This document shows, one piece after another, positions 21,761 to 48,548 of a stretch of 64,000 nucleotides of DNA. This DNA is from Paraphysomonas bandaiensis (lineage: Eukaryota > Protista > Chrysophyceae), in the NCBI GenBank assembly GCA_965644295.1, contig CBFFRP010000436.1, positions 1-64,000 on the forward strand, in the 5' to 3' direction. The notes beneath the pieces are model-generated. The model made no database searches. It was not told the DNA's origin and saw nothing but the letters and a program-made list of their open reading frames with translations. The position numbers were made by a program, and so were the translations under genes. Numbering within the stretch: position 1 is the first letter of the stretch; each line of letters begins with the position of its first letter.

Positions 21761-24441
21761 CCAAGCTGCATATCCATAATGAGTCTTTGGGGTTTATATA
21801 TGCTATCTCATGGGTGAGCACATAGAACACTGCATGTCCATCTATGTACGTGTGTGTAGAGGGTTACGTACTTTGTTTCGTACACTAATATCTGCTCCTT
21901 CTCTTAAAAGACACTCAACTATATCTCTGTGACCTCTAGAGGCAGCCAAGTGAAGAGCTGTACAACCCTTCTGTAAAACAATAGTAATCACATATGAGTC
22001 CTATGACACGATATGTATATATATGTGTGTGTATATATGTGTGTATAGAGGGGTTACTTACCTTGTCTCGTACATGAATATCTGCTCCTTCACTTATAAG
22101 ATACTCAGCAATATCTCTGTCATTATTATACACAGCATAGTGGAGTGCTGCATCACCATCCTATAAAACAATAACAGTAATCAAATATGAGCCCTTAAAG
22201 CACTGTATGCATATATACGTGTGTATAGAGGGATTACTTACATTGTTCTGTATATTAATATCTGCTCCTTCTCTTATAAGAAACTCAGCTATATCTCTCA
22301 GACATTTAAAGACAGCGAAGTGAAGAATTGTCCAGCCACCCTATAGAACAAAAAATAATCTCATACGAGCCCTATTGACACCGTATGTATATGTATGTAT
22401 AATTATATGCCGTGTGTTTATATATGTATATATGTGTATATATGATTGAATGTATATATGCATGTATATAAGTGTAGAGGGTTACTTACATTGTCTCGTA
22501 CATGAATATCTGCTCCTTCACTTATGAGATACTCCGCTGTATCTCTGTGACGATTTGAGACTGCACACCGAAGAGCTGTTTCACCATCCTATAAAACAAA
22601 AAATAATAGTCACATAATCCCATATGACAGGATATTTATGCACATGTATGTATGTATGTGCGAAGAGGGGCTACTGACATTGTTTCGTATACGGATATCT
22701 GCTCCTTCTCTTATAAGACACTCCGCTGTATCTCTGTGACCTCCAGAGGCAGCCAACTGAAGAGCTGTAGAACCATTCTATGAAAACAAATCACATAAGA
22801 CCCTTTACAACATGATATATATGAGGGGCTAGTTACATTGGTTTGTATATGAATATCTGCTCCTTCTCTTAGAAGATACTCAGCTATATCTCTATGACCT
22901 CTAGAAGCAGCCAAGTGAAAAGCTGTCCAACCATTCTATACGACAAAATAATCATTTATGAGACCTATTACAGGATATGAATGTATATATATGTGTAGAG
23001 GGGTTACTTACTCTGTCTCCAATAGTAATATCTGCTCCTGCTCTTATAAGATACTCAGCTGTATCTCTGTCACCTTTAGAGACAGCCAACTGAAGAGCTG
23101 TCCTACCATCCTAACAAACAAAAACAATTATACGTATGCGCCCATATGACAGGATATGTATGCATATATTCACTTATGTTAATATAATATGTATGTGAGT
23201 ATATATATATGTATCTATAGAGGAGTTACTTTGTCTCGTATATTAATATCTGCTCCTGCTCTTATAAGATACTCAGCTGTATCTCTGTCACCTTTAGAGA
23301 CAGCCAACTGAAGAGCTGTCTTACCATCCTATCAAACAAAAATAAGTATCACGTATATAGCCCTTATGACAGGATAGGTCTGCATATATACTAACGTAAA
23401 TATCATATGTATGCATGCATATATGATGATGAATATATGTGTATGTATTTATGTATAGAGGGGATAATTACATTATTGTTTTGTTTATTAATATCTGCTC
23501 CTTCTCTTATAAGATACTCAGCTATATCTCTGTGACCTTTAGATACAGCCCAGTTAAGAGGTGTCCTGCCAAACTATAAAAACAAAATATTAATCAAAAA
23601 TTAGCCTTTATAACACTATATACATGCATGTGTGACATATTCCGAAAGCACGCCCTCGTAAAGTGCTAGTGTTGATAAAACTCAGTATCTATGTATGTAT
23701 CTATGTCAAGTGGGGTTACTTACTCTGTCTCCAATAGTAATATCTGCTCCTTCTCTTATAAGATACTCAGTTAAGTCTCTGTAACCTTCAGAGACAGCAC
23801 GCCAAAGAGCTGTTTCACCATCCTATGAACAATAACAATCACATATGAGCCTTCATGACACTGTACGTACATGTATATCTATATAGGTATACGCTACGTG
23901 TGTGTGTACATGTATATCTGTTTCTTATATGTCAAGTGTATATATATGTATGTGTTACTTACTTTGCTTCGTGTATGTATGTCTGCTCCTGCTCTTATAA
24001 GATACTCAACCATACCTCTCTGACCATTAGATACAGCCAACTGAAGAGCTGTCCAACCTAACTATAAAACAACATCAATAATCACATATGAACCTTCATA
24101 ACACTGTATATATATGTATGTTTATGGAGGGGTTACTTACTTTGTTTTGTGTATGTATATCTGCTCCTGCTCTTATGAGATACTCAGCTATGTCTCTGTG
24201 TCCATGGTAGATAGCCACGTTAAGAGCTGTTCTACCAAACTATAAAACAATAATCACATATGAGCCCTCATAACCCTGTATATAAAACACTGTATGTATG
24301 TATGTATGTATGTATGTATGTATGTAGGTAGGTAGGTAGGTGGCTTACCCCATCTCGTGTATTGATATTATCACCCCTCTCAACACACGACTTCACTCTA
24401 TCGATATCACCTCTCACCGTATATATAATAATATCAGGCAT
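21319..24441 (-). CDS. Ankyrin-repeat protein 2 (~12 single-repeat exons plus caps)
   Basis: MPDIIIYTVRGDIDRVKSCVERGDNINTRDG followed by ~99-nt phase-0 exons xGxTALxLAVSxGxRDxAEYLIRxGADI; paralog of gene 1. Confidence 0.88.
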
Positions 24442-25013
24442 CTTTATATATATGAACAGAAGTGAAGTGAATTGAAGTAAACAGAAGTGAAATGAAGTGA
24501 ATTGAAGTCAAATTTATGTGAAGTGAAGTGCAGTGAAGTGAAGAAGTATATATATAGAGAGAGTGTGTGTGTGTGAGAGGTGGCGTGATTACACACAGCA
24601 CAACAAAACAAAAAAAGCAAGATACCATTTGACAGACATCAAGACATGTGTAGGAATTCCTACTGCTGTGTATCGGACTATACAGCAGTATTTGTATGCT
24701 GTTTTTTGATGGCCAAAATATTCACAAAAAGGCTGATTTTTTCACCTAATCGACACATTGCTGTATACTATTCGTACACTATATACTGTATATCGTACTT
24801 CAGAGGTTTTTTGTATAAGAGTTGACAAAAGTAGGATATTTTTCCTAGTTTTCAGTCTTCGAGTTTCGTGTTTTCAGTTTGATTTCGACTTGAACTTCAT
24901 TCGTTTTTTCAGTCTCACTTCCACTTCGTCTTGTCGAAACTATGTAAAATTCTTGGTCAAAATATCTGCTACAATAAGACGCATAGTTATCAAATTTTTA
25001 CAAGGATCATATT

Positions 25014-25349
25014 ATGCTTTTTGATGAACCAGCAAGAACTCCCTTAGAACTTAATAAACACATGATTCAATGCATTAATAATGGGTTAAAAAGAGACGTT
25101 GAACAGATGCTTAAAGAAGGAATTGTGGATCCCAATTTTACAGAAAACAAACAGGAACATCCCTTGCTTGTTGCAGCAGATCGAAATGATGTAAAAATGA
25201 TGGAAATATTAATTCAACATGGTGCTGATGTAAATCAGTGTGTTACCTCTTCGGGTAAATCCAGGTTATTAATGTTAGCTGAGTACTATGAAAATGAATC
25301 AATGGCTGAATTAATCAATAATGCGAGCAATTCACCAGCTCCCAGGTAA
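25014..25349 (+). CDS. Small bacterial ankyrin-repeat protein (effector-like)
   Basis: HPLLVAADRNDVKMMEILIQHGADVNQ; AAGGA RBS upstream; no introns. Confidence 0.8.
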   Translation: MLFDEPARTPLELNKHMIQCINNGLKRDVEQMLKEGIVDPNFTENKQEHPLLVAADRNDVKMMEILIQHGADVNQCVTSSGKSRLLMLAEYYENESMAELINNASNSPAPR

Positions 25350-25388
25350 TATTTTAAATTGATAATTCATTGATGAAAGGACTCATTA

Positions 25389-26987
25389 ATGCCGAAAAGA
25401 GATCGTGTGACCATTAGTTTATTTAGTGTCGAAAAAGATGGGGGCTTTAACCGTTCTGCATTAGGTGAAATTAATAATATCAAAGTAATGAAGGAACGCT
25501 TAGCAGAAGAGGCACTTAGGCAAGGAAGAATGCCACCTGAAATAGTTGTGTCTGAATTACTTATTCCTAATTGGAAAACTGGTAGCAGTTTTGAAGACAG
25601 TAGCTATAGGCACCTAGAAGCTGAGTTTTATAGTGAATTAAGAGAAACATTAGATGGTGCAGGGTTGCAAGATGTTGTTCTGAATAATTTTCACAACAAA
25701 GCAGGCCCCGAAGAGCTTGGATATTTGAATGGTTTACAAGCAAGAGGAAGTAATGCCGATATGATTAAGACACATGCCATCATTGACCCAGATAATGTTG
25801 GACGTCGGCATTTACAAATCGATAGTAATACAAAAATTCATGACTACGAAGGTTTTTATCGAGCTACATTTGGTGCAGAGACACAAAGAGATGAATTGGT
25901 TGGGTTAAACGCTAGTTATTATGACAAGGATTATGTTTCTGCACATAATAAAGTTGTTTATACTAATCCTGACAGTGAGCTGATAGCAGCATTGACTGAA
26001 ACACATTTTGCTTATTGTGAAAAGCATAAAGATGATCACTTATCACCTGAAAAGGAAATAGAAAAAATATCTAAGAACTCAATATATTCAAAAGACTTTG
26101 TTGTTGCGCTTGAGAAAATAGGTTTGACGAAACCATTGGTAAATTTAGAGGGTAAAAAAATATATCCAGCGGTAATGAGCAGGGATGAGTATAGATTAAC
26201 CGCAACGGTTGTAACGGCCGTCAACATGTCTTGGCGAGATGGTACTGATGACTCAAGTAAGTTAAAAACATTGCCTGCTGTGAAGGTGGGGGATGCCATG
26301 TGTGATTATGCAAGTTTTGTAATAGCAGTGAAAAAGAATGTGGGGAATTTAGGGCTGCATAAATTTGCAGGAGATTCCGCTACTTTAGCTGCCAATGCAG
26401 AGAATACAACAGTTTTAAAGGAGGACTCCGAACCACGGAGAGAGTTGCAAAGCATTTCTAACTTAGTTGTTGATGATGCCATTATTACAAGATTTTATGA
26501 TAACGCCGTCGATCTCGTTGAGGGCAATGCCGACTTGTCACCAGAGGAAAAAAGAGAGACATTGGTGGCACTGGCTTCTAAAATCCCTCCTACTCCTAGA
26601 GGCAATGCTTTAATAAACAGGTTATTTGGTTGCACGGTTTCAGAGTTAATTGAAAATCCATTTCAAAAATCAAAGCAATTTGAAATACCTTCTTTAATGG
26701 AATATAGAGAAGAAGAATTAATGAGATTGGATACACGGATAGAAGCGCTACGACATCAGACAAGGACGCCAGTGGAGAGGTGCCACACGTTAGAACTTGC
26801 TAGAGAACTAACAGATGCCAAAAGAGAAATGGTTTCAGTATTAAGAGAACACAGATTTGATAGATTCAGTACTGATGAATTAAGAGAACAATATAGGATC
26901 TGTGATGATAAAGCTGAAGGACGAGTATCAGCACTCCCTAAACAGAGCGAAGAAGCAAAGATCCAAAGAACTTTGTTGTTCAAATAG
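25389..26987 (+). CDS. Bacterial hypothetical protein (effector-like), probably cut at the junction at ~26980
   Basis: 532-aa intronless ORF with AAGGA RBS; last codons and stop come from the antisense strand of the sucC fragment. Confidence 0.7.
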
Positions 26988-27151
26988 AGTTCTTTGGCAA
27001 TATCAGTTGTTTCTTCAATCAAAACACTGTTAACAGGTTGTCCATTTTTATCTGTCTGATAAGTCACTAAGCGCGTCCCCATCATACCATCAATGGCTCT
27101 GACTAAATCATCTCTATTATCGACAAGCTTAACACCACCTGCTTTACCGCG
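26981..27151 (-). pseudogene. sucC: 171-bp internal fragment of succinyl-CoA synthetase beta subunit
   Basis: [10 protein letters not shown]...[33 protein letters not shown]. Confidence 0.92.
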
Positions 27152-27736
27152 TAATTCTTTTGCCTCAGATTCCACCATTAAAATAGCGTTTTCAGTACCA
27201 GAAACCACCAAATCAAGTTCAGATGCTTGTAAATCAGTTGGCGATGGATTTAATGAATAGATACCATCGTTATAGCCAACACGCGCTGCAGCAACAGGCC
27301 CATCAAAAGGTACGCCTGATAAAGTGAGTGCGGCTGAAGTACCAATCAGCGCCAAAATATCTGGCTGCACATCAGGGTTTAATGACATAACTGTTGCAAC
27401 CACTTGCACTTCGTTTCTAAAGCCTTCAGGAAATAAAGGCCTAATAGGTCTATCGATTAAACGACAAGTTAGAATTTCTTGATCACTTGGTCGGCCTTCG
27501 CGTTTTAAGAAGCCACCAGGTATTTTTCCTGCCGCATAAAAGCGTTCCTGATAGTTAACGGTTAAAGGGAAAAAGCTATTGTTCTCTCCACCATCTTTTT
27601 TAAATACCACGGTCACCAAAACACGTGTACCGTTCATGCTAACCATGACACTTGAATCAGCTTGGCGTGCAATTTCACCTGTTTCTAAAACCAGTTGATG
27701 CTCACCAAATTGTATTTCTTTTATTATTTTAGACAC
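27152..27736 (-). pseudogene. pnp: Polynucleotide phosphorylase N-terminal fragment, fused in frame to the sucC piece
   Basis: [46 protein letters not shown]; ends at MVESEAKEL; GTG start inferred from GAGG RBS. Confidence 0.95.
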
Positions 27737-27750
27737 ATTTTTCCTCGCAT

Positions 27751-27774
27751 AAAAAAGGCGCAATAAAGCGCCTT
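27751..27774 (-). terminator. Intrinsic terminator between rpsO and pnp
   Basis: AAGGCGC-N6-GCGCCTT hairpin with U-tract on the minus strand. Confidence 0.75.
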
Positions 27775-27835
27775 AAATGAAAATTTGATAGAATTTCAGG
27801 CTATTAACTCTCATTAATAACCTCTCTATACCATA

Positions 27836-28079
27836 TTAATAAGAATCTCTTAATTTTAATTTTTCAATTAAAGAATAATAACGAGCACTTTCTTTTGACT
27901 TCAAGTACTTCAATAGCTTTTTGCGCTTATTCACCAATGTTAACAAACCACGACGAGAATGTACGTCTTTTTTGTGTTGTTTAAAGTGTTCGGTTAAATA
28001 GATAATTCGCGCAGTTAACAAAGACACTCGTTTTATTATCGTCAACAATTTCTGAAATTTGTGCACTTGTTAGTGACAT
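27836..28079 (-). pseudogene. rpsO: 30S ribosomal protein S15 with small deletion and frameshift
   Basis: [16 protein letters not shown] is out of frame with [19 protein letters not shown]; the conserved DTGSPEVQ segment is missing. Confidence 0.9.
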
Positions 28080-28216
28080 TTGTTACTCCTACGAACTGCT
28101 CTAACTCAGTTATATTATATAAACTCAAGTTAAATTAAAATTTTTAGTGGCGTATTCTAACGTTTATTTAAGTATAAAACAAGCATTAATGTACGACCAT
28201 TTCTTTTAAATTCTAG

Positions 28217-29107
28217 TTAGATATTATTTTGTATTAATCGTCTAACTTTTAGGCTATTATCACCATTGTATTGCCCTAAGCCAATAAACTCATCAGCTTC
28301 ATTAATCAACTGGTATAACGTGCCTGCATTCACCTTTTCATCAAGTTCTATCGTTTTACCAAAATACAGCGCCTGTTGTTGGCTGGCAGTAATGTTTACT
28401 ATAGGAAAATGTGACACCATCGACTGGATCGAGTAAAGCAAAGCCAATGGATTGGCGCTGTTTTCCAACTCCGACATTGAGATCATTGCTTTACCTTCAA
28501 AAGGACAAGAAAAATCTCGATGCAGCTTCGTAACAAAAGCACCCACTTCTAAGTAATTGCCAATATCTTCAACTAAATTTCGAATATATGTACCTTTGCT
28601 ACAACGTACACGAATCGTAAAAAAAGGTAGGTTAAAATTTTCTAAAGCCAGCTCATAAATGGTAATACGTCTTGCTTTTCGTTCAACTTCTATACCACGT
28701 CTTGCTAACTTATATAAAGGCACCCCATCTTTTTTTAAGGCTGAAAACATGGAAGGTACTTGCTCAATATTGCCTGTAAAGTGCTGCAAAGCTCTTAATA
28801 TATCGGACTCAATTATGTGACTCGGATCTTGTGATGTTAAGACTTCACCTTCGGCATCTTGGGTAGAGGTTGTTTCACCAAGCTTACCTGTGGCTGTATA
28901 TCCTTTGTCCGCATCCAACATGAATTGACTGAACTTAGTTGCATCACCAAAACAGATGGGGAGCATACCTGAGGCCTGAGGATCCAAACTACCCGTGTGA
29001 CCTGCTTTTTTAGCTTGAAACAAACGTTTAACCGTTTGTAGTACTTTATTAGATGATTGATTTAGGGGCTTATTTAATAACAAAACCCCATCAATTCGCT
29101 TTAACAC
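28217..29107 (-). CDS. truB: tRNA pseudouridine(55) synthase
   Basis: GVLLLNKP, KKAGHTGSLDP, CSKGTYIR; operon position. Confidence 0.96.
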   Translation of the reverse strand: MLKRIDGVLLLNKPLNQSSNKVLQTVKRLFQAKKAGHTGSLDPQASGMLPICFGDATKFSQFMLDADKGYTATGKLGETTSTQDAEGEVLTSQDPSHIIESDILRALQHFTGNIEQVPSMFSALKKDGVPLYKLARRGIEVERKARRITIYELALENFNLPFFTIRVRCSKGTYIRNLVEDIGNYLEVGAFVTKLHRDFSCPFEGKAMISMSELENSANPLALLYSIQSMVSHFPIVNITASQQQALYFGKTIELDEKVNAGTLYQLINEADEFIGLGQYNGDNSLKVRRLIQNNI

Positions 29108-29500
29108 CTAGTTAACTGCTTCTTGTTGAAAATTATCATCTTGAGAAGTCGCTGGCACAACATCGTCGATTAAACGACGCAATTTAGCACCATACTCGAT
29201 AGATTCATCATAAACAAAACGTAGCTGAGGTACGACACGAAACTTCATACTGCGAGCAAGCGCCGTTCTTAAGAAACTGGCACCATTATTTAAAATACTT
29301 AAAGTCATGTCGCTGTCAGATTTTTTACCTAATACAGTAATATACACTTTTGCAATAGACATATCAGGCGATACTTTAACAGCAGATACAGTTATGATTT
29401 GAGGTAATCTCGGATCTTTTAATTCCATTTGAATAATTTGCGCGAGCTTCCTTTGGATTAAACCAGATACGCGGTCTGTTCTCTTAAAATCACTTGTCAT
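29108..29500 (-). CDS. rbfA: Ribosome-binding factor A
   Basis: RTDRV, KDPRL, VSPDMSIAKVYIT, RVVPQLRFVYDES. Confidence 0.96.
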   Translation of the reverse strand: MTSDFKRTDRVSGLIQRKLAQIIQMELKDPRLPQIITVSAVKVSPDMSIAKVYITVLGKKSDSDMTLSILNNGASFLRTALARSMKFRVVPQLRFVYDESIEYGAKLRRLIDDVVPATSQDDNFQQEAVN

Positions 29501-29509
29501 TTTACTTCT

Positions 29510-29902
29510 TTAAACCTTTGTTTGAGCGAGTTCACGTTTTACTTCAATGGTTTCAAATACTTCAATTTGATCCCCTTCGCGAACATCGTTGTAATTCTTA
29601 ACACCAATACCACATTCAAAGCCTTGGCGTACTTCCACCACATCATCTTTAAAACGACGCAGTGACTCTAAGGTGCCCTCATAGATAACAACGTTATCAC
29701 GCAAAACACGAATTGGGTTATTACGCTTGATACTGCCTTCAATAACCATACAACCTGCAATAGCACCCAGTTTTGGAGAACGGAAAACATCGCGCACTTG
29801 AGCAATACCGACAATTTGTTCTTTAAATTCAGGAGCAAGCATACCTGTTAAGGCTTTCTTAACTTGATCAACCACATCATAAATAACGCTGTAATAATGA
29901 AT
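29510..29902 (-). pseudogene. infB: Translation initiation factor IF-2, C-terminal fragment
   Basis: [39 protein letters not shown]; upstream part replaced by unrelated antisense DNA. Confidence 0.95.
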
Positions 29903-30615
29903 AACACTTATTACAAGAAAAAAAGCAATTACAAAAAGCCCTCGCACTTGCGCAAAAAGAATTGGCCTTATTATCTCCTTTAGTTAAACATGGCTCTGTA
30001 TCAGAAGTAGAACTCATCCGTGCAGAGCGATTAGTTAATGAAATACAAAGTAAAATTCTAGCTTTCAATAGCCAAGCACTAAAAGAGCTTAACCATGCAA
30101 AAGCAGAACTAAATAGCTTAAAAGAATTATATGTGGCAGATAAAGATCGCTTACAAAGAACCACCATTCGCGCCCCACTAAAAGGGATCGTAAAACAAAT
30201 TAATATTAATACCATAGGTGGCGTAATCAAACCGGGTATGGACTTAATAGAAATAGTCCCCATAGAAGACACCTTATTAATAGAAGCCAAAATACGCCCC
30301 TCAGACATAGGGTTTATTCACCCCAAACAAAAAGCCATGGTTAAAATCACCGCTTATGATTATTCAATTTATGGAGGGCTTAAAGGAACAGTTGAGCACA
30401 TTAGTGCTGATACTATCGTCAATGATAAAGACGAAAGCTTTTATTTAATCAAAGTTAGAACCAACAAAAACTACTTAGGCACAGAAAAAAAACCACTCGC
30501 CATTATCCCTGGTATGCAAGCATCTGTAGATATTTTAACCGGCAAAAAATCGGTATTAGATTATCTGCTAAACCCCATACTTAAAGCAAAACATAAAGCA
30601 TTAAGAGAACGTTAA
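29903..30615 (+). pseudogene. HlyD-family type I secretion membrane fusion protein, C-terminal fragment
   Basis: TIRAPLKGIVK, GGVIKPG, PSDIGFI, KITAYDYSIYG, DYLLNPI; N-terminal TM half absent. Confidence 0.92.
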
Positions 30616-30865
30616 TTATGCCCGGCGCTCTAGAGGCCAAATGATTTAGGACTTATTGTTTTTTTTTATATCATTGCAGAGACATATCGCATATTTTTCT
30701 TGATTTTCATCTTAAACCGTCCAAACTATAAAAATCGCGCCTTATAACTAAGCGCTACACAGGGCATAACAAGATTTGTTCAATCCAATTTTGACCAAAA
30801 CAATTTACCCCCCCCATCACAAAAAGTGAAAAGGAATTTTCTGAGAATGATTAAGGACTAATAGA

Positions 30866-31495
30866 ATGAAGAATAAAAAAAGATACAAAACCTTAGTATT
30901 GCTAGCTTCACTGACATCAAGTTTGCCATGCTTTTCAATTACATTAGAAGAAGCTGTCCAACATGCCTTGTTATCCAACCCAGATATCCAATTTAATGTA
31001 GCAAAGAGTCTTTCATCTCAACAAGAAATGGAGGTTGCCAAAGGCCGTTATTACCCTTCTATAGACATACGTATGGGCATTGGCCGCGAAGAAACCGAAA
31101 ATGCAATTACAAATTCAAGTAGTATTGTCAGTACAGACGATCCCTTAACTAGAAAAGAATTTAGCATTGAATTAAAACAAAATATATTTTCAGGGTTTGG
31201 TATTGTTGGCGAAAAACAACGATTAGAAAATATGTGGAATGCGCAGCAATACAAAACTTATGGGGTAGCCGAAGATTTAAGCCTAGATGTGGCCGAGAAA
31301 TATTTAGCCGTATTAAAGCAACAACGTCTGCTCCAATTAGCACGCGCAAATATTACAGAGCATCAACGTATACTGAATATGATAAAACAACGCTCTAATG
31401 CTGGGGTGAGTCGTCAAGCTGAAATGGAACAAGCAAAAGGCCGTCTGGCTTTAGCTCATAGTAATTTCATCAGCGTTGAAAATGATTTAAGAGAC
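30866..31495 (+). pseudogene. TolC/LapE-type outer membrane protein, N-terminal ~210 aa
   Basis: Signal peptide, ITLEEAVQHALLSNP, AKGRYYPSID, QAKGRLALA; similarity ends abruptly at ENDLRD. Confidence 0.85.
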
Positions 31496-31903
31496 TGGGC
31501 AGCACAATCACCTGCTGTAACAGAGAATGCTGAAAATTCAGAAAAAACAAACTCTGAAGAAGAGAAAAATGACTCAACTAATCAAGATACTATTATAATT
31601 ACAGCGCAAACTGGTATTGATAAAACAAACGAGGTGGTTGAGCAAGCAACTGACGAAGTTAAAGCACAAAAAGATGTTGTTCTTAACCCTGCGTTAGTTG
31701 GCATGGTTAAAGAAAGTGCCGCAAGTACTCAAGCAACACTTGAAAATGAAAGCATTAATAGTGAAACAAATGACACACCTGTCACAATTGATTCACCAAC
31801 TGTTGATACTAAAAAAGTGGTGGAAAAATCTGCGCCTGTTGAAAACACAGACAAAAACGATGATATAAATGAAGAAAGCAGCTCTTTAGGCTTAACTGCA
31901 TAA
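31496..31903 (+). pseudogene. Acidic low-complexity C-terminal fragment of an unrelated bacterial gene, fused in frame to TolC
   Basis: Abrupt change to E/N/T/S-rich sequence, followed by a terminator. Confidence 0.65.
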
Positions 31904-31920
31904 ACTCTTCCTTTCTTTAT

Positions 31921-31960
31921 AACCCTTACTCAGGATCTTTTTTCTGGGTATGGGGTTTTC
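31921..31960 (+). terminator. Intrinsic terminator
   Basis: AACCCTTACTCAGGA..TCTGGGTATGGGGTTTT hairpin after the stop codon. Confidence 0.7.
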
Positions 31961-32129
31961 TAATTTAATACTTCCACACTTCTCATTTAACTGCACACAA
32001 CTTCTGTTGCTGTCTACCACATTATTCTTAGCTGTCCAGAAGTGAGATCGCGATATATCGCGAGTGCGTTGATTTTCATAGCATTTGAATGTTTTTTTCT
32101 CTGTCGGAAGTTGTCCGAAAAGAATGACA

Positions 32130-33195
32130 AAATGGACTCAAAAGGTTGCCTTTGTCACATCTTTCCATTCGGTCATTCATGACTCTAATTTATAATATAT
32201 ATCACCCCATCTTTTTAGATCATCTTCCTGTATCATTCATCTTGCACTGTGTCAAAGGATTATCGCCAAAGAGCTCTTTGCTTCGATATGGAAGAGGTTG
32301 AAGATGGCCTGCTTTGCTTGCTATCTCAGAGTGTCTAATGGACTTTTCTGAACTTAATAGTATACAATTGCTTACGTTTTCCCATAATGGAAAACAGTTT
32401 TGTGCGTTTAATGAGATTTTTTCTTTTCTCACTGCCATTTTCAAGTCTCATGAGAATATCCCTTGCTCGGAGCCGCATCAGTTATACCAGTACCCACAAT
32501 TCCTCGTCCTGAGGCCGTTTCTTTCGGAGACATGACATATTTACAGTTCAGGGACGCATTGGTAAAGACCTTTATGGAAAATCCTATAGACTTCAGGGGA
32601 AACATGTTGTCATTAGGATTTAACTCCGATAAACATTTGAATGAGTTGCAGGATCTGTGCCGTGGATTATTTCTGGCAGAATTGCACGCCAATACTCACT
32701 GGTTCGGTGGGAGACAATATTCAGAGCTTCTGGTCTCTGTAATGTCAACACTTTCCATGTCTTATGGAAGCAATTGAGTTTGGTTATTCGGCAAGTTCAT
32801 TGACTGGCACATCAGCGGAGCAGATGTTTTCCTACGCTGATCGACAATGCAAAGCAAATAGTAGGGTCCAGGCCAATATGTCCCTCAGAGGTTCATGTCA
32901 AGGTAACACTCCTAAACAACCTCTTCGACATAAGCAAAATTTCAATCAATGCAAATCTTGGTGTTCATTTCAAGTACCCCATTTCTTGCTATTATACTAT
33001 TAGGCCTTATTCTTCATAATAATCAAGCATTACCTTTTAACAATACAAAGTGTATCTTTCATTAAACGCTAAGAGATAAAGAATACAAGTAAGTTTACTA
33101 CGAGTGATGCAGCAGATGATTACGTTAATTTAGTAGATGTGATGATATCTCATTTGCAAATGCTTGAAGCAGCTGTTATTGAAAATAACATCTAG
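32130..33195 (+). pseudogene. Unknown eukaryotic, possibly TE-borne, gene remnant
   Basis: Overlapping frameshifted ORFs 32314-33003 and GT-AG-like boundaries; no recognisable domain. Confidence 0.3.
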
Positions 33196-34276
33196 CCACT
33201 GTACCGTAATAATATATACCAACTATTTTTTCATTGTTGAGCCGTTTCTAGTTTTATTAATTAATGTGATAATAATTATTATATCAGCACAATATATAAT
33301 AGTGAATTTATAAATGTACTGTAATTGCGGTCGGTGAAAACTAACCAGCAAATCATGGATACAAATGCAAAAAATACGTCAAAGCAGCACATATATATCA
33401 AACATTATACATAATATATCACACATCATGCAAGGGATATATCGTCAAAAGTTCGTGCATCGCTGCAGTTCCTGTTGGAAACAACATAAATAAACAAACG
33501 CTCAAAATTTGAAGGTTTAACATTTTCACCTGATTGATAATTCTTATTCCAAAGGCCAGTAATGTGTTTTTGGAAGTGAAAAATGATGTCAAGAAAATAA
33601 ATGCCAATGTAGCCGAGAGAGGCTTAGAAACACAACGCCACAGGTAAAAGCAATAACATGCAATTACTTGTGTTTACTCATTAGGAAACCGCATATAGAC
33701 CAGTTCCTGGGCCTTCATCTCTGCAGTAGTAGCCTTGCAGCGGCTACGCCCACCCTTCAATTTACTATACGAGGGGATGTAATATATACATATAAGTTTT
33801 ATATATGAAGGCTATGTATGATATTGTTATTCCACATTAGCTATCAAGTCGCTGGAAGTCTAGCTCTGGATGGGGCACCACCGTTGGCCAGTGTTGGCTA
33901 CCTGCGCATTACACCCTAAGAGCACTACATGTACACTCAATCCAAAACAACAACACAAGTCACTCTGCGGTATGTGGCATATAAGAAGTGATGACCTTAA
34001 ACCGAGACAACTACTGATGACAAAGATACACAAGGCATATATGGGAACTAGTTTACCTAAATATATATTGATAAGAACAGCGTAATGAACCTGCATCTGA
34101 ACTCTCTCCTTCATACTATCCGGATGGATACTGTATCCAGATATGCATCATATATAGCAACGCACATATTCTCGTGTAGTACAGTATTACTGACGGTAGT
34201 ACAACAGACACCGAAATGAAACCTCCAAAAAGCCTTTTTTTGCAGTGATTTTTGGGATTTCATTTCTGGACCAAGA

Positions 34277-37200
34277 AATTGTGTAAATAGAGTATGTATT
34301 TTGTATATACGGTTGCTGGTATACTGGCAGGAGTGTGTTGTATATGAGGGTCATGTGACCATAAATAGACACACAGACAGTCTATTGTGGGGTGAAATTA
34401 TGACCCCACCTGCAGATTAAAACAAAGGACGATTGATGGAGTCGTTAATGGACTGATATTACTTCACTGTACTGCAAGATTCATGCTGTTCAAGACCAGT
34501 ATGATGACTTTTATCCGCTTGAGACAACTGCTTCATGTGTGTGGTTATTGCCATCAGAAGAGACAGTGAAGTGGAAGAGGGCCCTTACAAGAGGATAAAA
34601 TACTGCTTGAATCGTTATTTTGCAGAATGCATGCTCAGTGTGCATCCTGTGAAGTTCTCCCGATAATTCATGGATTCAAGTAATGTGACCGTTAGCATCT
34701 TCAATATCCATCAATGGGGGGCAGCGCTCATATTAGTATTATTAATGCATGCAAGTAATAGAAATAATATTTTGGGTAAATTATTTCCTATATATACACC
34801 TCTGTATCAGTATCGTACCCGATAAGTTATCTCGGTGTAAGATCGGTGTAAGCTAACTGAACTCAGATTGGCGGTGAAGACATCTGAAGTGCACAATGCT
34901 TCTGCTTCTTAGCAGGTGATTGGGAGCTAGTTTACACTTTGGTTCAGATTTCTCGTGGTATGTATATTAGTAGGTTCTAAGTAGTAATTGCCGTTAATTT
35001 TTACTTCGTAAGATGTTAATGCTTTGTCTTTTCATGATTGATACAGATCTGCAATATTGCTGGTTTTTATATTATTTCCTACTTTTCAATATATATATTA
35101 TACTGTGTTTATTGTTGTTAATTATAGTACCTCTAGGTCGTATTGGTATTATATTTTTAGGTAGTACCTATAGGTAGTATTGATTCAGTTTCGCTTAATC
35201 CAAAAGCCAAGCCTATGTCTCGGATTTGATCCTCACTAGCATTGGCAATGGAAGGGTCGCTCTAACCCTCCAAGCATAAGCCTGAGGGTCCTTCTCACTG
35301 ACTCAAATTTAGTAGACTCTTGTGCGCTATCAAGAGTCTCCTCCTCCATAATAATAACAATATAATCAAGTCACAATGAACAAATATATGTCTACAACTA
35401 CAATGCTATCTACCAGCAATTTCAAGAGTAAGGAAATTGCATCTTATTATCAATAATCAATATAAATACTATCTACGATTCCGTGATCAATGGAATGAAC
35501 ATCATTCATATTCAATACCAAACACATCAGTCTAACACAGTTGATCATAATAACTCATTACAACTGTATAAGGGAAGATACATTCAGTATTCTCATTGTA
35601 GTTGAAGCCTGGTATTCGTACTCCTTAGTACAATCAATCCCCAATAAGCACTGAAGGAAATACGTAATGTATAACTGTATTACTGGATAATCTGGCAATA
35701 CACATCTATCAGCGTGGATATCAAACCCGGAATTCTCCAGTAAACTTCTCCAGCCTTAAAGTCAATATATATATATAATAAGAACATATATATATGTATC
35801 ATCCATCATCATTATCATCATTATGTCTCATTATTGATAATCATGTCTTTCTTTGTCTTTTGAATGATTATGTAAATATCAATGATAAGCATGAATTGTC
35901 ATAGTCATAATATATCATATATCTTAGTGTGAGTTATGGTAATAATAATAATATTCAAATTATGTTTGCACAGATAGTATGTACAAACTTAAGCATATAC
36001 AATAGAGAGCTTGTAGAATAGAATAACCTGATAGCTGGTTATTACAATCATGGTAATGTCAACATAATATTCTACTAATAGGCTGGCGTATTCATCCTCT
36101 GCAGAGTGTTACAGGTAGCACTAATATTCTATTTATGATAGATGGTAAATATCAAGATACAAAGCACCCTATATCTAGGTGACAATGATTGACATGCTCC
36201 AACACAGTATCTTTATATACATCAATACGCACAGGACACTATGAGAAAGTATCTATAAATGATACAGTCATCGTAGTATTTACCTTCAAATCAGAGAGGA
36301 GAATGACACTCAAGTGGAGTTATTCTTATGTGAGTCTCTGATGATCAGCTCTGCAGTATGAGTATATTAATATGCTCTGTTTCGAACCACTAAATTGAAT
36401 ATATTACAATATCATCCGATCGTATTACCTGAGAGCCCTCTGGTGTTATGGTCACGGAATCAACTCTGCTATCTCTGTCTTTGAAATAGACCAACTCTCC
36501 TGTATGAATGCCACTTAACCATACCTTTCACCAGCTAAATCAACAACCAGCAGCATGTGGCATGAAAGAACTATGAGCTCATGTATTCCCAGTGAGGTTA
36601 TGATCATATCACAGCCTGCATTCCTCTTTACTACAAGAACTATCGCATCATATTCTGTATGTGAAGCTCACAGACATCTGCCTGTCTCTCCTGGATTCTG
36701 TGGACAATATGCCGATTATTATCTTGAAAATGTGTAGTTTTGTGTCATTTTTGAGTGAAAAACCAGGGGATTTTTTAGTTTAGGTTGTGTAATTCATTTT
36801 ACATAGTTCTTCTAGTTTCGCTAAACCCAAAAACTCACACACATCTATGTAAAACTAAAGGCTGGAATTTTGGGAGTTGTGTAAAATAATTTACACGAGA
36901 AAAAATTATTCTCTATTGTAGTGTGTGTGAGTTTTTGGGTTTAGCGAAACTAGAAGAACTATGTAAAATGAATTACACAACCTAAACTAAAAAATCCCCT
37001 GTTTTTTCACTCAAATATGTCACAAAACTACACATTTTCAAGATAATAATCGGCATATTGTACACAGAATCCAGAGACAGATGTCTGTTAGCTTCACATA
37101 AAGGATACGATGCGATACTTTTACAGTAATAAGAGGAACGCATGCTGATATGATCATAACCTCACTGGGAATACATGAGCTCATAGTTCTTTCATGCCAC

Positions 37201-39434
37201 ATGCTGCTGGTTGTTGATTCAGCTGGTGAAAGGTATGGTTAAGTGGCATTCATACAGGAGAGTTGGTCTATTTCAAAGACAGAGATAGCAGAGTTGATTT
37301 CATGACCATAACACCAGAGGGCTCTCAGGTAATACGATCGGATGATATTGTAATATATTCAATTTAGTGGTTCGAAACAGAGCATATGAATATACTCATA
37401 CTGCAGAGCTGATCATCAGAGAGACTCACATAAGAATAACTCCACTTGAGTGTCATTCTCCTCTCTGATTTGAAGGTAAATACTACTATGATTGTATCAT
37501 TTATAGATACTTTCTCATAGTGTCCTGTGCGTATTGATGTATATAAAGATACTGTGTTGGAGCATGTCAATCATTGTTGACGTGCAGCATACTCTGCGGA
37601 GCCGTATGAACTCGATTGTCCTGTAACACCAGAGGAGTCTTAGGGTAACGTTCTTGAATTATGTTGTGAAAATATTTAATTTAGAAATTTTGATTCTATG
37701 ATACAGAGCATATGACGAAAATGACACTTCAGAGTTCGATAATGGAGAGACCCACGCAAGAATAACTTCAATTGTCAATTGAGTATGTATATACTAATAT
37801 GAATGTAAGATATATTACTTTCTCACTGTGCCCTATACGTATTGATGTAAATAAGGACGGTGTATTGAAACATGTCAATCATTGTCACCTAGATATAGGG
37901 TGCTTTGTATCTTGATATTTACCATCTATCTTAAATAGAATATTAGTGCTACCTGTAACACTCTGCAGAGGATGAATACGCCAGCCTATTAGTAGAATAT
38001 TATGTTGACATTACCATGATACCTGGTAATCGTAGGTAGTATATATTGATTATTCATAATAAGATGCAATTTCTTCACTCTGGAAGTTGCTTGTAAATAG
38101 TATTGTAATTGTAGACTTATCCATAGTTGTTGATTTATGATTTATTGCTATTATGGAAGAAGCGCCTAAGAAAGACGTTCTAAGTTAAGTGCAGCTATTG
38201 CAGTACTAAGAATGCTGTTGGAAGAAAATGATCCACTAATGGCTGGTTACCCCAATGAGGAGTATGTCAGGAGCGTTGGACTTATGGTTGGATTAAATGA
38301 TGCCAATATCGACATATCGACATATGATATTGCACTAATACACGTGCCTAATCGCCTCCCTATAGGTGGTATCTATAACCTCTACATTTCCTACTGATAA
38401 GTATCCCTATTTATATTAAAATGTACCTACAGGCACTGCCTACATGTATCAATACTACCTATAGGTACTACCTAAAAATATAATACCAATACGACCTAGA
38501 GGTACTATAATTAACAACAATAAACACAGTATAATATATATATTGCAAAGTAGGAAATAATATAAAAACCAGCAATATTGCAGATCTGTATCAATTATGA
38601 AAAGACAAAGCATGTATTCAATTAAAATAAGATGGTATTCGCATTAACATCTTACGAAGTAAAAATTAACGGCAATTACTACTTAGAACCTACTAATATA
38701 CATACCACGAGAAATCTGAACCAAAGTGTAAACTAGCTCCCAATCACCTGCTAAGAAGCAGAAGCATTGTGCACTTCAGATGTCTTCACCGCCAATCTGA
38801 GTTCAGTTAGCTTCCAAGGTAATGATAACATTTGTTCGTCCAAGCCATCTTACACCGATCTTACACCGAGATAACTTCTCGGGTACGATACTGATACAGA
38901 GGTGTATATATAGGAAATAATTTACCCAAAATATTATTTCTATTAATTGCATGCATTAATAATACTAACATGAACGCTGCCCCCCATTGATGGATATTGA
39001 AGATGCTAACGGTCACATTACTTGAATCCATGAATTATCGGGAGAACTTCACATGATGCACACTGAGCATGCATTCTGCAAAATAACGATTCAAGCAGTA
39101 TTTTATCCTCTTGTAAGGGCCCTCTTCCACTTCACTGTCTCTTCTGATGGCAATAACCACACACATGACTCAGTTGTCTCAAGCGGATAAAAGTCATCAT
39201 ACTGGTCTTGAACAGCATGAATCTTGCAGTACAGTGAAGTCATGTCAGTCCATTAACGACTCCATCAATCGTCCTTTGTTTTAATCTGCAGGTTGGGTCA
39301 TAATTTCTCCCCACAATAGACTGTCTGTGTGTCTATGTATGGTCACATGACCCTCACATCTAACACACTCCTGCCAGTATACCAGCAACCGTATATACAA
39401 AATACATACTCTAATAATACGTAATTTACACAAT
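34277..39434. repeat. ~5.1-kb imperfect palindrome (arms 34277-36843 and 36922-39434, ~78-bp spacer)
   Basis: 34277-35180 mirrors 38449-39434; 36047-36843 mirrors 36922-38020 with an extra block; middle segments more diverged. Confidence 0.95.
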
Positions 39435-39469
39435 TTTACATAGTTTCGACCGTTTAGAAAAATGGTCCA

Positions 39470-41530
39470 AAGTGTGTAATTTTCGTGTAATTGTATATGG
39501 GGAGCAAAATACAGAACGGTATACTGTACTCTGTAGTCATATCATGTAAGGGTATAGAGAGCGATGTTGATGGCATATATATACTATATGGGGGTTACCA
39601 TAGCAATAGAATTCATCATTAACGCTGTATAAAAATATATTTTGGGTAAACTGTACAGTATATAAATCACGTGTATCAGTACCATACAGCAGAAGTTATC
39701 TCGGTGTAAGATCGGTACTTCTTATATGCCACATACCGCAGAGTGACTGCTGAGTAAGTGTTCTGGATTGAGAGTTCATGTAGTGCTCTTAGGGTGTAAT
39801 GCGCAGGTAACCAACACTGGCCAACGGTGGTGCCCCATTCAGAGCTAGACTTCCATCGACTCGCCAGGTATTGTGGATAAACAAGATTACACGTAACCTC
39901 ATGATTATAAACTTCTGACAAAAACTCCTGCGACTACGCTGGAAATCATCCTTCATTATGAGTGTTATATATATTACGTACTTGCAGTAGCGCGTACTTT
40001 TTACTACTGACAAGATGTTATTGTGTTTCCTAGTGACCATTGTTATGAATATGTTGCATGAAATGTTGCATGAATTGCACAATTAATTCTGACAAGATTA
40101 TTAGTAATCTACTGAAATGTTTACAGTAGTTCAATAATAATGTTGTCAGTATTATTTCTTCTTCCTTCATTACGCTTTTTCTCGTTTATATGTATGTGCT
40201 TCTTCTATTCTTTTATGCATGTAATAATAATAATCAAAATATTGTAATATCTTTTGTTTTGGTCTTTGCCATCAAACAATCGAATATTGTTTGAGTCATC
40301 CCGGCGCTTGCACCAACTATATACAGCTAAATGAAGTGCTATACAGATCGCAGGGTTAAATGGGTTCGCGTAAAGACGCTTTACATCGCTCGTGCTCTCA
40401 CCGGCTTGATCAGCTTTAGTTGTACAAAATGCAGTTTGCAGAGCATCATTAGGCCAATCCATTTGAGCCATGTTGATGTCATCAATATTATCCGACCGTC
40501 CGATTGTACCCACAGATAACTTAGTGAATAGGCCAGCAAACAGTCCCTCATTCCAAGTTACCTTGTTGCCATCAGGTCTCATCATGCAGAAATGTTTGCA
40601 TAATGCTACATAACCATCCAGATTAAAAGCACTCTTCCCTTCTTTAGGATTCATAATACCTCTTCTTTTCTTGGCACCTATATCACGTTTGTATGCAGCA
40701 ATAGCAGTTTTGCATGCTAGGTCAACCTTCGGTGGCCAAGGGTGCCCAATTTTGTCCATGGCCGGACAGTCATACTCATGCCACCACCGCAATGCAGATT
40801 TGTAATTCTGGTAAGTTTGGGCTGATACTGTCACAAGGTTTTTTCCTGGGTTTAACAGATCTTCTTCTACTTCTTGACAGTCATCTATCTCTGTTCTTAC
40901 TTTCCGCTTTCTGGGAAGTGTCGGATCGACTGATATTGCAGCAAAGAGAACTTCTGCTGTATGTTCTGCTATAGGTAATTTAAGTTTACAAAGTTTGCGT
41001 GCTTGTCCTGTATGCATTAGGGCCAACCCATCATCATCTGTTTCAATTGAGTCCAGTCGTATATATGAGTCGTTTAGTATTCGAGTCAGTGTGGACATTC
41101 TAGATAAATATCCTTTTTTGGACTCTTCCAATACATTCCTCTCCTTTTGTCCTTGAATCACTAGGTGTATTGCTGCAGGATCCATTTTGTCTATAGGTAA
41201 TACTCTCAGTTCTATAGCAGATTATTCTACGAAATATTAGCCTCTTAAGATATCATAATATATCCTTTTGGTTCAACGAACAAATCAACTGTTCATCACT
41301 GTAACATAAAATCAAGGCTTTTTTAAGCAAAAAAAACAATTTTGTGAATTGGGTGCCTTCAAAAATAGGTTAAAAATCTGTTTACTCCTGTGTAATTAGA
41401 ATTACACAGATCTGTTTGTTTCGAAAAATCTCAAAATCGCTGTTGTTTGTGTGGGTGATGTTTTCCTCCTGTGTAATTAGAATTACACAATCCAATAAAA
41501 ACTGGGGTTTCCAATTACACACTTCGGTGG
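39470..41530 (-). mobile_element. Crypton-type (tyrosine recombinase) transposon relic 1
   Basis: YR-like ORF plus palindromic TGTGTAA-N6-TTACACA sites at 41389 and 41470; boundaries approximate. Confidence 0.7.
40205..41185 (-). pseudogene. Crypton (CryptonS-like) tyrosine recombinase, C-terminally truncated
   Basis: YKSALRWW, KEGKSAF, GRSDNI..W.NDAL..F..TKADQAGE..LYANP..P.IC; the later HxxR/Y catalytic region is missing. Confidence 0.8.
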
Positions 41531-41791
41531 GTTTTTAGTGTTTTGTCGCATGTTTTTGTATAAGACGCCCTTACTACAGAACTCGTCAGAGGAAATTATG
41601 CTTGTATCCTACAGCCACACCACAGAAGCATAATAAAACACCATACACTTCTTTGTGCCCTATGTATATCTTATACAGTCACATCAAGTACTAAACTGAA
41701 AATAACATCCTCTATCTTGTGTCTGATTTCTCTTCGCAGCATCTCATCAATACAAGAAACAAACATCCATCTACTGAACAATGCGAGCCGA

Positions 41792-43450
41792 ATGATGAAG
41801 CTCAGGACCACCTCGTGCAGTACGCTGGCATTAGCTTGTCGACGCAATAAGTCTTGTCGATTTCTTTCCATTGACACCAACCTCATCGTGGACAAAAGTA
41901 TGTTCTCACACTTTAGATCGAAACCAGACAAGAACGAGACCGATTTCCTCGAGAGCTTGGCGAACTGTCGAGTTGAAGCCATTGGGGATGGCATCGATGT
42001 GATTCGTATTAACAACAAGTTGGGAGTGCCATGGGAATGCTTGGGCCCACAGAAGTTGTTTGTAAGGGAGTTTTATCCTGACTTGTTGAGAGAAATAAGG
42101 AAACATAAGAGAAGTGTTCTCATTGGAAACCCTGGAATTGGCAAATCCTTTTTCCAGTATTATTACCTGGCTCGAATACTGAATCCGTCTTTGTTCGGGC
42201 CCCTTCCTCCTGACTGTGACGGCTCCACCACCCCGCCGAAGATAGTCATCCGCCAGGAGGGCACTTCTACCATGACAATATTCGACATTGCCAATCGCCA
42301 AGCAGAGAGAGTTGATGGTTGTCCAGGTACACTTCTGGACTGTTTTGATCCAGAAACGTCATTATATTTGATGGAACCTGGTAAAGCTGTGGAGGAACCA
42401 TTTTTTGCAAGACTTCGCTTTCCCACTTTGGCCACCGTACCTCCGAATCCGGCCCGATATAAGCAATTCTGCAAGCACGGAGGAATAGCACTGTACATGC
42501 CTGTTTTCACTCTTCGGGAGTTACTTGCGATTGGGAAGTATTTGCTGGAGAACGAGCATGTGCCGGAGTTGCTGCAGCCTGAGTATTCTTCTGAGCAGAT
42601 CACGAAGCGCTTTCACCAATTTGGGGGTATTTTCCGCCATGTGCTGCCGGTATCTCTCGCTTATCTTGATATGTGTCGACGTAGTCAGTCCAAGGCAATA
42701 GGTTCGTGTAATGCACGTGCACTCCTGGTCTCCGGCGATATTGAGGATGCGGACGTCAGTCATTTCATCATGCAATATGACGTGGAGAGGGATGGCGAAT
42801 TCCCCTTTTGCGAATATCGTTTGAACTTTGTGAACGAGTCCGTCGCATCTCAAGTTCAAGATAAGCTTAACAAGGGCTCTCTGAGCGACAGGAGATCAGC
42901 GCTGATTCGAAATGACATGATAGGATTTATGGCGGATGCATCTGCTAAGATCTATGAAAGTGTCATTGCGGATCAATTGACATCTGGCGTGCGATGGAGA
43001 AAACGGGAAGTGATCGCCAGCTCAGAGGGGAAAGTAAGTGAATGGTCCAATTTCTCGTTGAGGTTGAATGAAGCGATTAAGGGGCACCCTCCTCCGTTCG
43101 AGAAAATGCGGCCACTGGTGCTGTACGTGCCTTCGAATCCGACCTTTCCATTGGTTGAATACATGTACAAGACGGAGCAGGGGGAATTGGTTATGTTTCA
43201 GGTCACCAGAAACAAGTCTGCAAAGAAGATTATCAAGGGGAGTGCTTTGGAGCAGTTATTGGACAAGATTAAACTTCCCGTCGACAAGGTATCGCTGCTG
43301 AGGTTAGTTCTCATCCCATTGCCGTCGCTGGCACAAAGCGCACGATTCGAAGTAGCCGAGGAGGACAAGATCCTAATGAATGCGGCGCTGGAAAATGGTT
43401 ATGAAGTCTGGCATATTCCCAGTGATTATTTGAGCTATTTCGCGGAATGA
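41792..43450 (+). CDS. Crinkler/RHS-like P-loop NTPase + restriction-endonuclease-fold protein, copy 1
   Basis: FVREFY, LIGNPGIGKS (Walker A), YMPVFTLREL, RFHQFGGIFR, FPLVE..MFQVT; intronless; start placed by alignment with copy 2. Confidence 0.85.
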   Translation: MMKLRTTSCSTLALACRRNKSCRFLSIDTNLIVDKSMFSHFRSKPDKNETDFLESLANCRVEAIGDGIDVIRINNKLGVPWECLGPQKLFVREFYPDLLREIRKHKRSVLIGNPGIGKSFFQYYYLARILNPSLFGPLPPDCDGSTTPPKIVIRQEGTSTMTIFDIANRQAERVDGCPGTLLDCFDPETSLYLMEPGKAVEEPFFARLRFPTLATVPPNPARYKQFCKHGGIALYMPVFTLRELLAIGKYLLENEHVPELLQPEYSSEQITKRFHQFGGIFRHVLPVSLAYLDMCRRSQSKAIGSCNARALLVSGDIEDADVSHFIMQYDVERDGEFPFCEYRLNFVNESVASQVQDKLNKGSLSDRRSALIRNDMIGFMADASAKIYESVIADQLTSGVRWRKREVIASSEGKVSEWSNFSLRLNEAIKGHPPPFEKMRPLVLYVPSNPTFPLVEYMYKTEQGELVMFQVTRNKSAKKIIKGSALEQLLDKIKLPVDKVSLLRLVLIPLPSLAQSARFEVAEEDKILMNAALENGYEVWHIPSDYLSYFAE

Positions 43451-45750
43451 GAAGGAACTATAGCAGTATTTTAGTGACAGTGACTTTAAGTCTTGTGCCA
43501 TCATCATCACAGCAAGTGCGCCTGCCTGCCTGCGGCTGAGGGGTCCACAGTGACCTGTGTATGTGTATCTCATATCTATCATGCTAGTGACGTTGTCTAC
43601 TTATTACTGTCATACATAAGAATAGCAAGTTATATTATATGGTATACACAACTCTTGTGAGTCAACTAATAAGCAACTTTGTACCACGCACTAGCTACTT
43701 CTCTCATGCATACATAATAGGTATTATCCGGAATCCGCCCGGACCCTTAATATCAAATAATCTCCCTTCTGCCCCCTGCTTTTTGCTTTTAATAGCGATG
43801 CGTTGTTTGGCGCTTAGAGGTACGAGGGTTTTAAGTGCTTAAACCCAAGGTTGCTTTAATCTGCCTTGCATTGTAGCCCGCTTATTAGCCTAGTTTTACT
43901 AATTACTAATAATAAAGAGAAGGCACTGTGACTCTGTAATCTGTAACTCCCCATCCAGAGGACAAATAAAATTATACTGTGCGCATGCTCACTGCTACAA
44001 ACAATCCACAGGGAACTCATCGAGGATGAAATACGCATTTTGACGCGCGTGCGGGGTTTTCCCAGCCTGAGCTCTGAGATAGAGTCGGCGCGTCATCAAT
44101 ATATTGCAATCATATTTAATCACTGTATATTATATTATGGTAAAATAATAAATAGACCTACTTTGATAAATATCCATGACTATTAATATCATAACATGCT
44201 CAATATCGTAACAATACATGTATCCTAATAACAATAAGGCATCGATATCATATAGATACGCATCATCTCTGCCTTATCCCATCCATCCTTTTCTTCACCT
44301 AGATTTACTCAATCCATATATACATCATATCATGTTTACCTACAAGTAAAGTCATCACATCATAAAACATATCTACCTACCACCGCAAGGATTATAGCAT
44401 AACATTTCTATTCGCTTACAAAAACGACATGTCTAATGTATTTCATCATCACCCCAAGATTATCACCCATATATGCATTCTCATATATCACAGTATATAT
44501 CGTCCACACACTCAATATCATAGATAGCATATAGTCACACATCTGACATCTCAATGCACCTCATCTAGCCATTAGACAGTGCTAATGACCACTATAGCAT
44601 AATATCAATACACCCATAATAAGCATTCATACAAACATATACAGCACACATAGTCATTCCCAGATACATTGGTTCTTATCAGAACTCAGCAATGCACATA
44701 GGATATAATAGTGCCAATATACACAATAATAGTCAATACTTATAGCTAACAAAAGACAGCTGCAGAAAGACACCATTTCGAATGTTACTATTTCTATGTG
44801 TGTATGTAGGATGTAGAAAACATGAAATAGAATGGTTGTGCATGTTCTGTGATATTAATTACTACTACGATACATCATGCTGGGTACTGAATCCTAGTAT
44901 TCTAGTATTATTACATCTTGAAAAGTTGCATCTCATTCCAATTTAGTCCACCCACGATTTCCTATATTATATATTTAATTATATTATATATATGCGCCTT
45001 TAGTTCTCATCCTTCGAACTCATCACACTAGCTGCTCTTCTTGCTTATATCTATATTATTATTAGAGCTAGCTATAAAGCAATTTTGATAAATATCTTGA
45101 GGCGCACCTGTCTAGCTAGCTCTCACTTTTTTGTTGGTGTGCAATGAAATAATGGCCATTGTGCGACGCCTTTCTGGCTTATTAAATAGTATTACTCCGG
45201 CAGCTTATGTAATTAATTTAGGTAGGAGCCCTGCGTCCTCAGGATGGCTATTGATCACTATATGCAGAGCGAGCAGTGGGATACATTAACCACTACTGAG
45301 ACTCTATATTCGACTTACTACTGCAGACAAAGTGTTTGGAGAGGTGAGAGGGTGTGGGGGGATCACGTATCATCTCTGTGGCTTGGATTCTGTGCCGGTC
45401 AGCATTCGACCGAAAAATATGGGATCCCACACAGTGCATATCAGGTCATACATTCACCAGAAATTTGGATGGTGCCTATAAGTAATATATATGATGCCAT
45501 ATCGATGGATGGAGGGCATTGATAGGCCATATCAACCAATTTGATTAGATTTATGTCCAAGTAGTCATAAAGTGTTACACTTCATTCATGGAGGTCATGA
45601 AGTGTAACACTTCGTCATTAGAATTGACCTGGCAATAGACTCTGCTGTAGTTATAAAAAGTAGAAATTGTACCTTGGGAATATCATAAGTCAGCTTCAAT
45701 GATAGAAAGTACATTACAAATGAACACTCAAGCAATAGAAATAAAGTGGA

Positions 45751-48468: not shown

Positions 48469-48548
48469 GACGGACCACAACAACATTTTTATGTTCCATC
48501 TCATCAATAGCAGAAACAAACATCCATCTACTGAACAATGCGAGCCGA

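Follow-up and report, generated by a model that had tools for sequence, protein, structure and literature searches.

The window analysed here comprises positions 1 to 64,000 (64,000 nucleotides) of contig CBFFRP010000436.1 from the chrysophyte Paraphysomonas bandaiensis (assembly GCA_965644295.1). It contains an insert of bacterial DNA, present once in the assembly, that splits the left tip of a host DNA transposon (Table 1).

A mosaic of bacterial gene pieces

The anatomy of the insert was read from the assembled contig using similarity searches, profile matches and alignments with the DNA of relatives. The 7,075 bp consist of at least five pieces (approximately 2022, 171, 2751, 1594 and 537 bp) in mixed orientation, with four internal joins that fall within genes and carry no restriction sites. 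The genes are intronless, and several are truncated in mid-frame. An initial annotation of this DNA had described about 7 kb of bacterial sequence between eukaryotic flanks, in about five pieces of mixed orientation, and all of the genes and junctions that it named are present. Its four joins (around 26980, 27151/27152, around 29902 and around 31495) coincide with the ends of the alignment to a relative, with sucC models and with the point at which TolC diverges. The tract itself stands, while its limits, given as 24940-31965, move to 24959-32033. The split host transposon and a 32-bp deletion in rpsO are new with respect to that first reading.

Table 1. Features of the bacterial insert and of the surrounding host DNA. 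aa, amino acids; ORF, open reading frame; dN/dS, ratio of non-synonymous to synonymous substitution rates; L002, metagenomic relative.
Feature	Position	Strand	Evidence or remark
Whole bacterial mosaic	24959-32033		7,075 bp, single copy
Intact ankyrin-repeat ORF, 111 aa	25014-25349	+	Pfam Ank_2, E 4.8e-08
Predicted effector-type GT-A glycosyltransferase ORF, 532 aa, 3' end truncated at ~26980	25389-26987	+	142 homologues
sucC internal fragment, 171 bp	26981-27151	-	ATP-grasp_2, E 1.2e-18; sucC models; junctions against Legionellales sucC DNA
pnp 5' quarter, ~195 of 740 codons	27152-27736	-	96% protein identity to L002; alignment stops at 27151
rpsO (S15), broken by 32-bp deletion	27836-28079	-	Three relatives have an intact 91-aa gene
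truB, intact	28217-29107	-	Profile match; dN/dS 0.064 against L002
rbfA, intact	29108-29500	-	Profile match; dN/dS 0.037 against L002
infB, last 130 codons (861 aa in relative)	29510-29902	-	99% protein identity to L002; alignment begins at 29902
hlyD (LssD/LapC-type), 3' part	~29903-30615	+	TIGR01843
tolC (LapE-type), first 211 codons	30866-~31496	+	Orthologues of 573-592 aa
Acidic 3' gene end without identified relative; stop at 31903, then non-host bases	31497-32033	+	AT-rich third positions
Left target-site duplication AAATT, 5 bp	24947-24951	+	Same 5-mer after right end; 5-bp duplications also match at other copies
First 7 nt (CTTGGTC) of left terminal inverted repeat of transposon	24952-24958	+	GTC repeated at 32034-32036
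Remainder of 2.25-kb non-autonomous host DNA transposon, ending ...TTCTGGACCAAG	32034-34275	+	Long copies on other contigs
Right target-site duplication AAATT	34276-34280	+	Matches left 5-mer
Paralogous arm end keeping the transposon's empty target	39360-39520	-	26/26 bases match across join

The longest piece, running from pnp to infB, is colinear with L002 at 83.6% DNA identity, and the match ends exactly at 27151 and 29902. L002 carries the whole nusA-infB-rbfA-truB-rpsO-pnp operon, so the breaks belong to the insert and not to the gene order of the donor; relatives are colinear. Within this piece, rpsO has lost 32 bp at 28028/28027, between GTG repeats (microhomology), which shifts its frame. 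Three relatives lack this deletion.

On one side of this piece, the sucC fragment (57 codons, model positions 54-110) reads in frame behind pnp, and the 532-aa ORF, cut near 26980, stops inside the antisense sucC piece. On the other side, the hlyD piece lacks the N-terminal 40%, and its product is 73-76% identical to unnamed proteins and 69-71% identical to Legionella pneumophila proteins of 378 aa. TolC similarity to orthologues stops abruptly after residue 211, beyond which an acidic tail continues the tolC frame to its stop codon, followed by a terminator-like hairpin (approximately 31920-31960) and about 70 more non-host bases. The tail has no match in the host, and no relative of it was found in protein and Joint Genome Institute (JGI) metagenome searches. 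The TolC encoded near pnp in a second related locus, L006, was also considered and is not an orthologue of the insert tolC. Since hlyD and tolC are not adjacent in any of five contigs from relatives (two with HlyD and three with TolC, all distant), a further join may lie within 30616-30865.

The insertion site and the age of the insert

The element at the insertion site has terminal inverted repeats that start with CTTGG and makes 5-bp target duplications of the A-N-N-T-T type. At least six other long copies, 95-98% identical, are found on other contigs; copies are located on C2, C64, C85, C159, C174, C218, C402, C418 and C470. Six of these other copies read CTTG-GTCCAGAAG uninterrupted. Excising the 7,075-bp insert together with one GTC yields a sequence that aligns with the six copies at 92-98% straight across the junction, and removing the element as well restores a target matching the paralogous arm at about 39.4 kb. 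The target duplication and the repeat tip together form a 12-mer that the window contains only once, where the insert begins on the left (chance about 1e-7 per position). The right junction reads ATTCTT-AGCT-GTCC, and the repeat may extend a few bases beyond GTC, which leaves the site unchanged. The flanks were contiguous before insertion, with a 3-bp repeat and almost no loss of host DNA. That they rejoin into one host element is a strong argument for real nuclear integration and against a misjoin. Judged from the assembled bases, both flanks are one locus, and such flanks are very unlikely to arise from a chimera formed during ligation or assembly.

A chimera would be the artifact to consider: fragments of a contaminant or symbiont that ligation or template switching had brought into a host read and that the assembly then retained. 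The insert genes do resemble those of a living bacterium, cultures of a bacterivore contain bacteria, and integration is seen here in assembled sequence and not in reads. Against this, a chimera must leave the host molecule, join at least five distant bacterial pieces without the help of restriction sites, and then return to the host at the very base it left, overlapping by 3 bp. The rpsO gene is frameshifted, and the assembly lacks the remainder of the donor: the L002 operon, used as a query, had no other match there, and those parts of infB, pnp and nusA that the insert does not include were not present. Nor does the assembly contain a bacterial 16S gene, its sole bacterial-type small-subunit ribosomal RNA being an AT-rich organellar one on C669. 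We therefore regard a chimera as quite improbable, and the insert does not appear to be simple contamination.

The position of the insert between the target duplications of the element might also suggest that a cargo transposon similar to Pack-MULEs acquired bacterial DNA and carried it to the locus. However, the cargo would split the left inverted repeat, leaving neither left end complete; no other copy bears this cargo, and the insert is single-copy. We consider this explanation extremely improbable. The end of the element had also been considered as a Crypton recombination site, an idea that was dropped after the inverted repeats and the 5-bp duplication emerged. The split left repeat probably immobilises the window copy. 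Another copy, at C64:233819, occupies the same target site (the end of a Crypton-related arm) in the opposite orientation, which suggests a target preference. At C218:8192-20140, a copy has been stretched to about 12 kb by nested long terminal repeat (LTR) retroelement DNA; this long copy contains no autonomous transposase, only the nested LTR retroelements.

The insert has hardly decayed. No stop codons interrupt its 6,090 coding bases, bounding neutral drift at about 1%, and dN/dS against L002 is 0.005-0.064. GC content at third codon positions (GC3) is 0.28-0.32 in nine insert pieces, as in L002 genes, and 0.20 in the tail, compared to 0.40-0.54 in three host ORFs. Because its genes are undecayed apart from rpsO (under about 1% drift), the insertion is recent. 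It must postdate the arrival of the element copy, which is 2-5% diverged from its sister copies.

These values also bear on the possibility that the mosaic formed while still part of a decaying symbiont genome and reached the nucleus whole. Consistent with that idea, both same-strand joins are in frame. Yet infB and pnp are cut, while dN/dS indicates strong purifying selection until the recent past, and the relatives are colinear; we judge an origin within the symbiont to be very improbable.

The donor and an effector-type gene

To place the donor, a quick maximum-likelihood tree (IQ-TREE) was built from InfB, RbfA, TruB and PNP with small sampling, excluding loci with fewer than three of the genes. 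The window groups with L002, L006 and a third locus, L007 (support 100), with the sampled Legionellaceae as the sister of that group (support 99; 11-row group with a Shimodaira-Hasegawa-like approximate likelihood ratio test value of 99). A position inside the Legionellaceae was not recovered in this quick, small-sample tree. Of the family-level assignment made earlier, the Legionellales-like character is thus upheld by the core genes and membership of the Legionellaceae is not. Across 203 GTDB genomes of the order, TruB identity does not exceed 55%. Searches of protein, GTDB and JGI metagenome data did not find the exact donor, the closest TruB being 85% identical. Together, these results suggest that the donor belongs to an uncultured lineage sister to Legionellaceae and is no known Legionella.

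The other pieces point in the same direction. The best named matches of HlyD are from Legionella. For the SucC piece, 29 of 31 Legionellales genomes score above the cut-off, compared to 13 of 40 other gammaproteobacteria, so that this short fragment leans to Legionellales. The uniform GC3 and the Legionellales affinity of the operon, HlyD, SucC and the glycosyltransferase would fit one donor. The contig of L006 encodes DotI/IcmL, so that the donor likely had an intracellular lifestyle; as a pointer to Dot/Icm translocation of the 532-aa product, this is circumstantial.

Two ORFs make up the left end of the insert. The 111-aa ankyrin ORF has only weak matches to named Dot/Icm effectors. The family of the 532-aa ORF occurs in 3 of 41 Legionellales genomes, with one homologue named from a Legionellaceae genome. 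We analysed this ORF as the window encodes it, cut end included. Its predicted structure (predicted local distance difference test score 95) matches YeGT, PaTox, NleB/SseK, SetA and LtpM with Z 13-15, the matches covering residues 2-320 only. A DxN motif (D145, N147) is nearly invariant among the homologues. In Legionella, LtpM is a DxN glucosyltransferase effector (PMC6393602), and the 532-aa ORF shares the GT-A fold, the conserved DxN, an upstream Asp/Lys and a Trp with LtpM and with SetA/Lgt/PaTox-type domains. The model superimposes on LtpM with Z 13.7 and a root-mean-square deviation of 3.3 A over 198 residues, whereas identity is only about 11% and the window ORF is truncated at its 3' end. 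LtpM has a C-terminal domain that binds phosphatidylinositol 3-phosphate; the helical C-terminal part of the 532-aa ORF has no family match. We conclude that the ORF encodes a near-complete, putative glycosyltransferase of the effector GT-A type.

Residues 1-148 of this ORF are identical to a EukProt entry (P0139). If that entry is transcript-derived, the identity would fit host transcription of the piece beside the left flank, hinting that it is already transcribed; alternatively, the culture behind the entry may have contained the living bacterium. Searches with TruB, HlyD and TolC returned no identical protein, and promoter and terminator scans gave chance-level results. A host ankyrin gene with repeated single-repeat exons (window 22000-24300, reverse strand) lies head to head with the insert, and the region upstream of it could drive transcription into the bacterial ORFs.

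Probable capture at a transposon end

We are highly confident that the finding is real. The explanation that we favour over the others, and consider very probable, is a recent, real nuclear insertion of end-joined fragments of one Legionellales-like genome at a break in the transposon tip. The chromosome would have broken 4-7 bases inside the left end of the resident 2.25-kb element, and the lysis of an intracellular or ingested bacterium would have set fragments of its genome free. These fragments, probably from one donor cell, would have been end-joined to one another and to both chromosome ends, before or during a single repair event that left the host DNA nearly unlost and a 3-bp repeat. 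The initial annotation had likewise proposed fragment capture at a double-strand break and had set the insert apart from simple contamination. The former is borne out by the rejoining flanks, the undecayed genes and the absence of the donor's other genes and 16S; the latter agrees with the single copy and the lack of the rest of the donor operon.

Several points weigh against this explanation. Nuclear integration is deduced here from the assembled sequence, and no insertion-free allele of the exact locus was found as a separate sequence in the assembly. The donor genome, against which microhomology at the internal joins could be read, is not among public sequences. The same-strand joins at 27151/27152 and at about 31496 are both in frame, for which the chance is 1 in 9. 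Finally, no transposase was found for the element.

The last point concerns the cause of the break. An aberrant or one-ended cut by the transposase of the element may have produced it, a suggestion to which we give roughly even weight. Alternatively, the insertion is real and was repaired by the same route, but transposase had no part in the break, which would have come from random damage or from the fragility of a palindromic region and hit the tip by chance. The region is indeed rich in inverted repeats and mobile DNA, and no transposase was identified. Of 10 element copies, 4 have an altered left tip, as against none of 6 right tips, a difference that is not significant. On the other hand, a site within 7 bases of an element end is a tiny target, and three other copies (on C85, C402 and C418) are altered within the same first bases. 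A chance break is accordingly a serious contender, though we think it somewhat less probable than not.

The insert has several known counterparts. In insects and nematodes, nuclear transfers from Wolbachia place fragments of an endosymbiont genome in host chromosomes, where they are mostly non-functional. The present case differs in its free-living protist host, its Legionellales-like donor and a pre-insertion site that can be rebuilt base by base. Complex nuclear insertions of mitochondrial DNA (NUMTs) consist of non-contiguous pieces in mixed orientation, include intergenic DNA, and show little or no host deletion and 0-7 bp of junction microhomology (PMC2820518). The insert resembles these and their plastid counterparts (NUPTs) in its non-contiguous pieces, mixed orientation, non-coding DNA and small host loss, but the donor is a gammaproteobacterium and not an organelle, and the break lies inside a transposon tip. 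By analogy with complex NUMTs, end joining would be the pathway; the GTC at the host site and the GTG at the rpsO deletion are compatible with joins at 1-7 bp of microhomology. In rice, breaks left by excised DNA transposons take up filler DNA of 1-123 bp (PMC4423477). Here too, a break associated with the end of a transposon admitted foreign DNA, but the element is still present (32034-34275), which does not fit an excision footprint with the element gone and the duplication left, and the DNA taken up is bacterial and 7 kb long. The process is therefore of a known kind, and its preservation is unusually good. No earlier report of this case was found in literature searches of incomplete coverage.

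The physical entry of bacterial DNA into protist chromosomes usually has to be deduced from transfers that are old and decayed. In this case, the pre-insertion site can be reconstructed with single-base precision, the genes of the donor are almost pristine, and each junction can be tested by polymerase chain reaction. The case would connect horizontal transfer with end joining at the tip of a transposon, and it would add an uncultured lineage, sister to Legionellaceae, to the associates of a marine flagellate. An effector-type gene would also have passed from the bacterium to the host, opposite to the direction usually discussed for Legionella. Most of the inserted DNA was dead on arrival; new host genes could arise from four parts of it at most, namely the ankyrin ORF, truB, rbfA and the near-complete glycosyltransferase. 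It is conceivable, although we consider it unlikely, that active transposon ends are entry points for bacterial DNA, that an aberrant transposase cut captured a shattered genome whose glycosyltransferase is already host-transcribed, and that a second bacterial patch, on C370, represents a later stage, which would explain Legionella-like effector domains in the host genome.

The first reading had proposed a look for the intact symbiont genome and for other such mosaics; the donor's other genes and 16S are absent from the assembly, and this other patch was noticed. On C370 (locus L115, positions 6171-8900 of that locus), an intact intronless 490-aa ankyrin ORF is followed by a frameshifted, stop-ridden nuoI region (decayed nuoIJK). 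It is apparently an older capture from another donor, which may be chlamydia-like.

Elsewhere in the window, a 146-bp tandem array (2070-7011; 33.8 copies, 99% identical) shows strong GC skew, and the contig begins with the same 146-bp unit. Two intronless Crinkler-like nucleoside triphosphatase genes (41740-43934 and 48497-50689) are 98% identical, and a related large ORF lies at 52013-54712. An ORF at 40205-41185 (reverse strand), beside nested long inverted repeats (34288-39413), has no Pfam match and is presumably a Crypton-like tyrosine recombinase. On C669, host mitochondrial Rpl2 and Rps19 are identical to NCBI proteins filed under a 'Rickettsiales bacterium' metagenome-assembled genome, which are probably those of a mis-binned protist mitochondrion.

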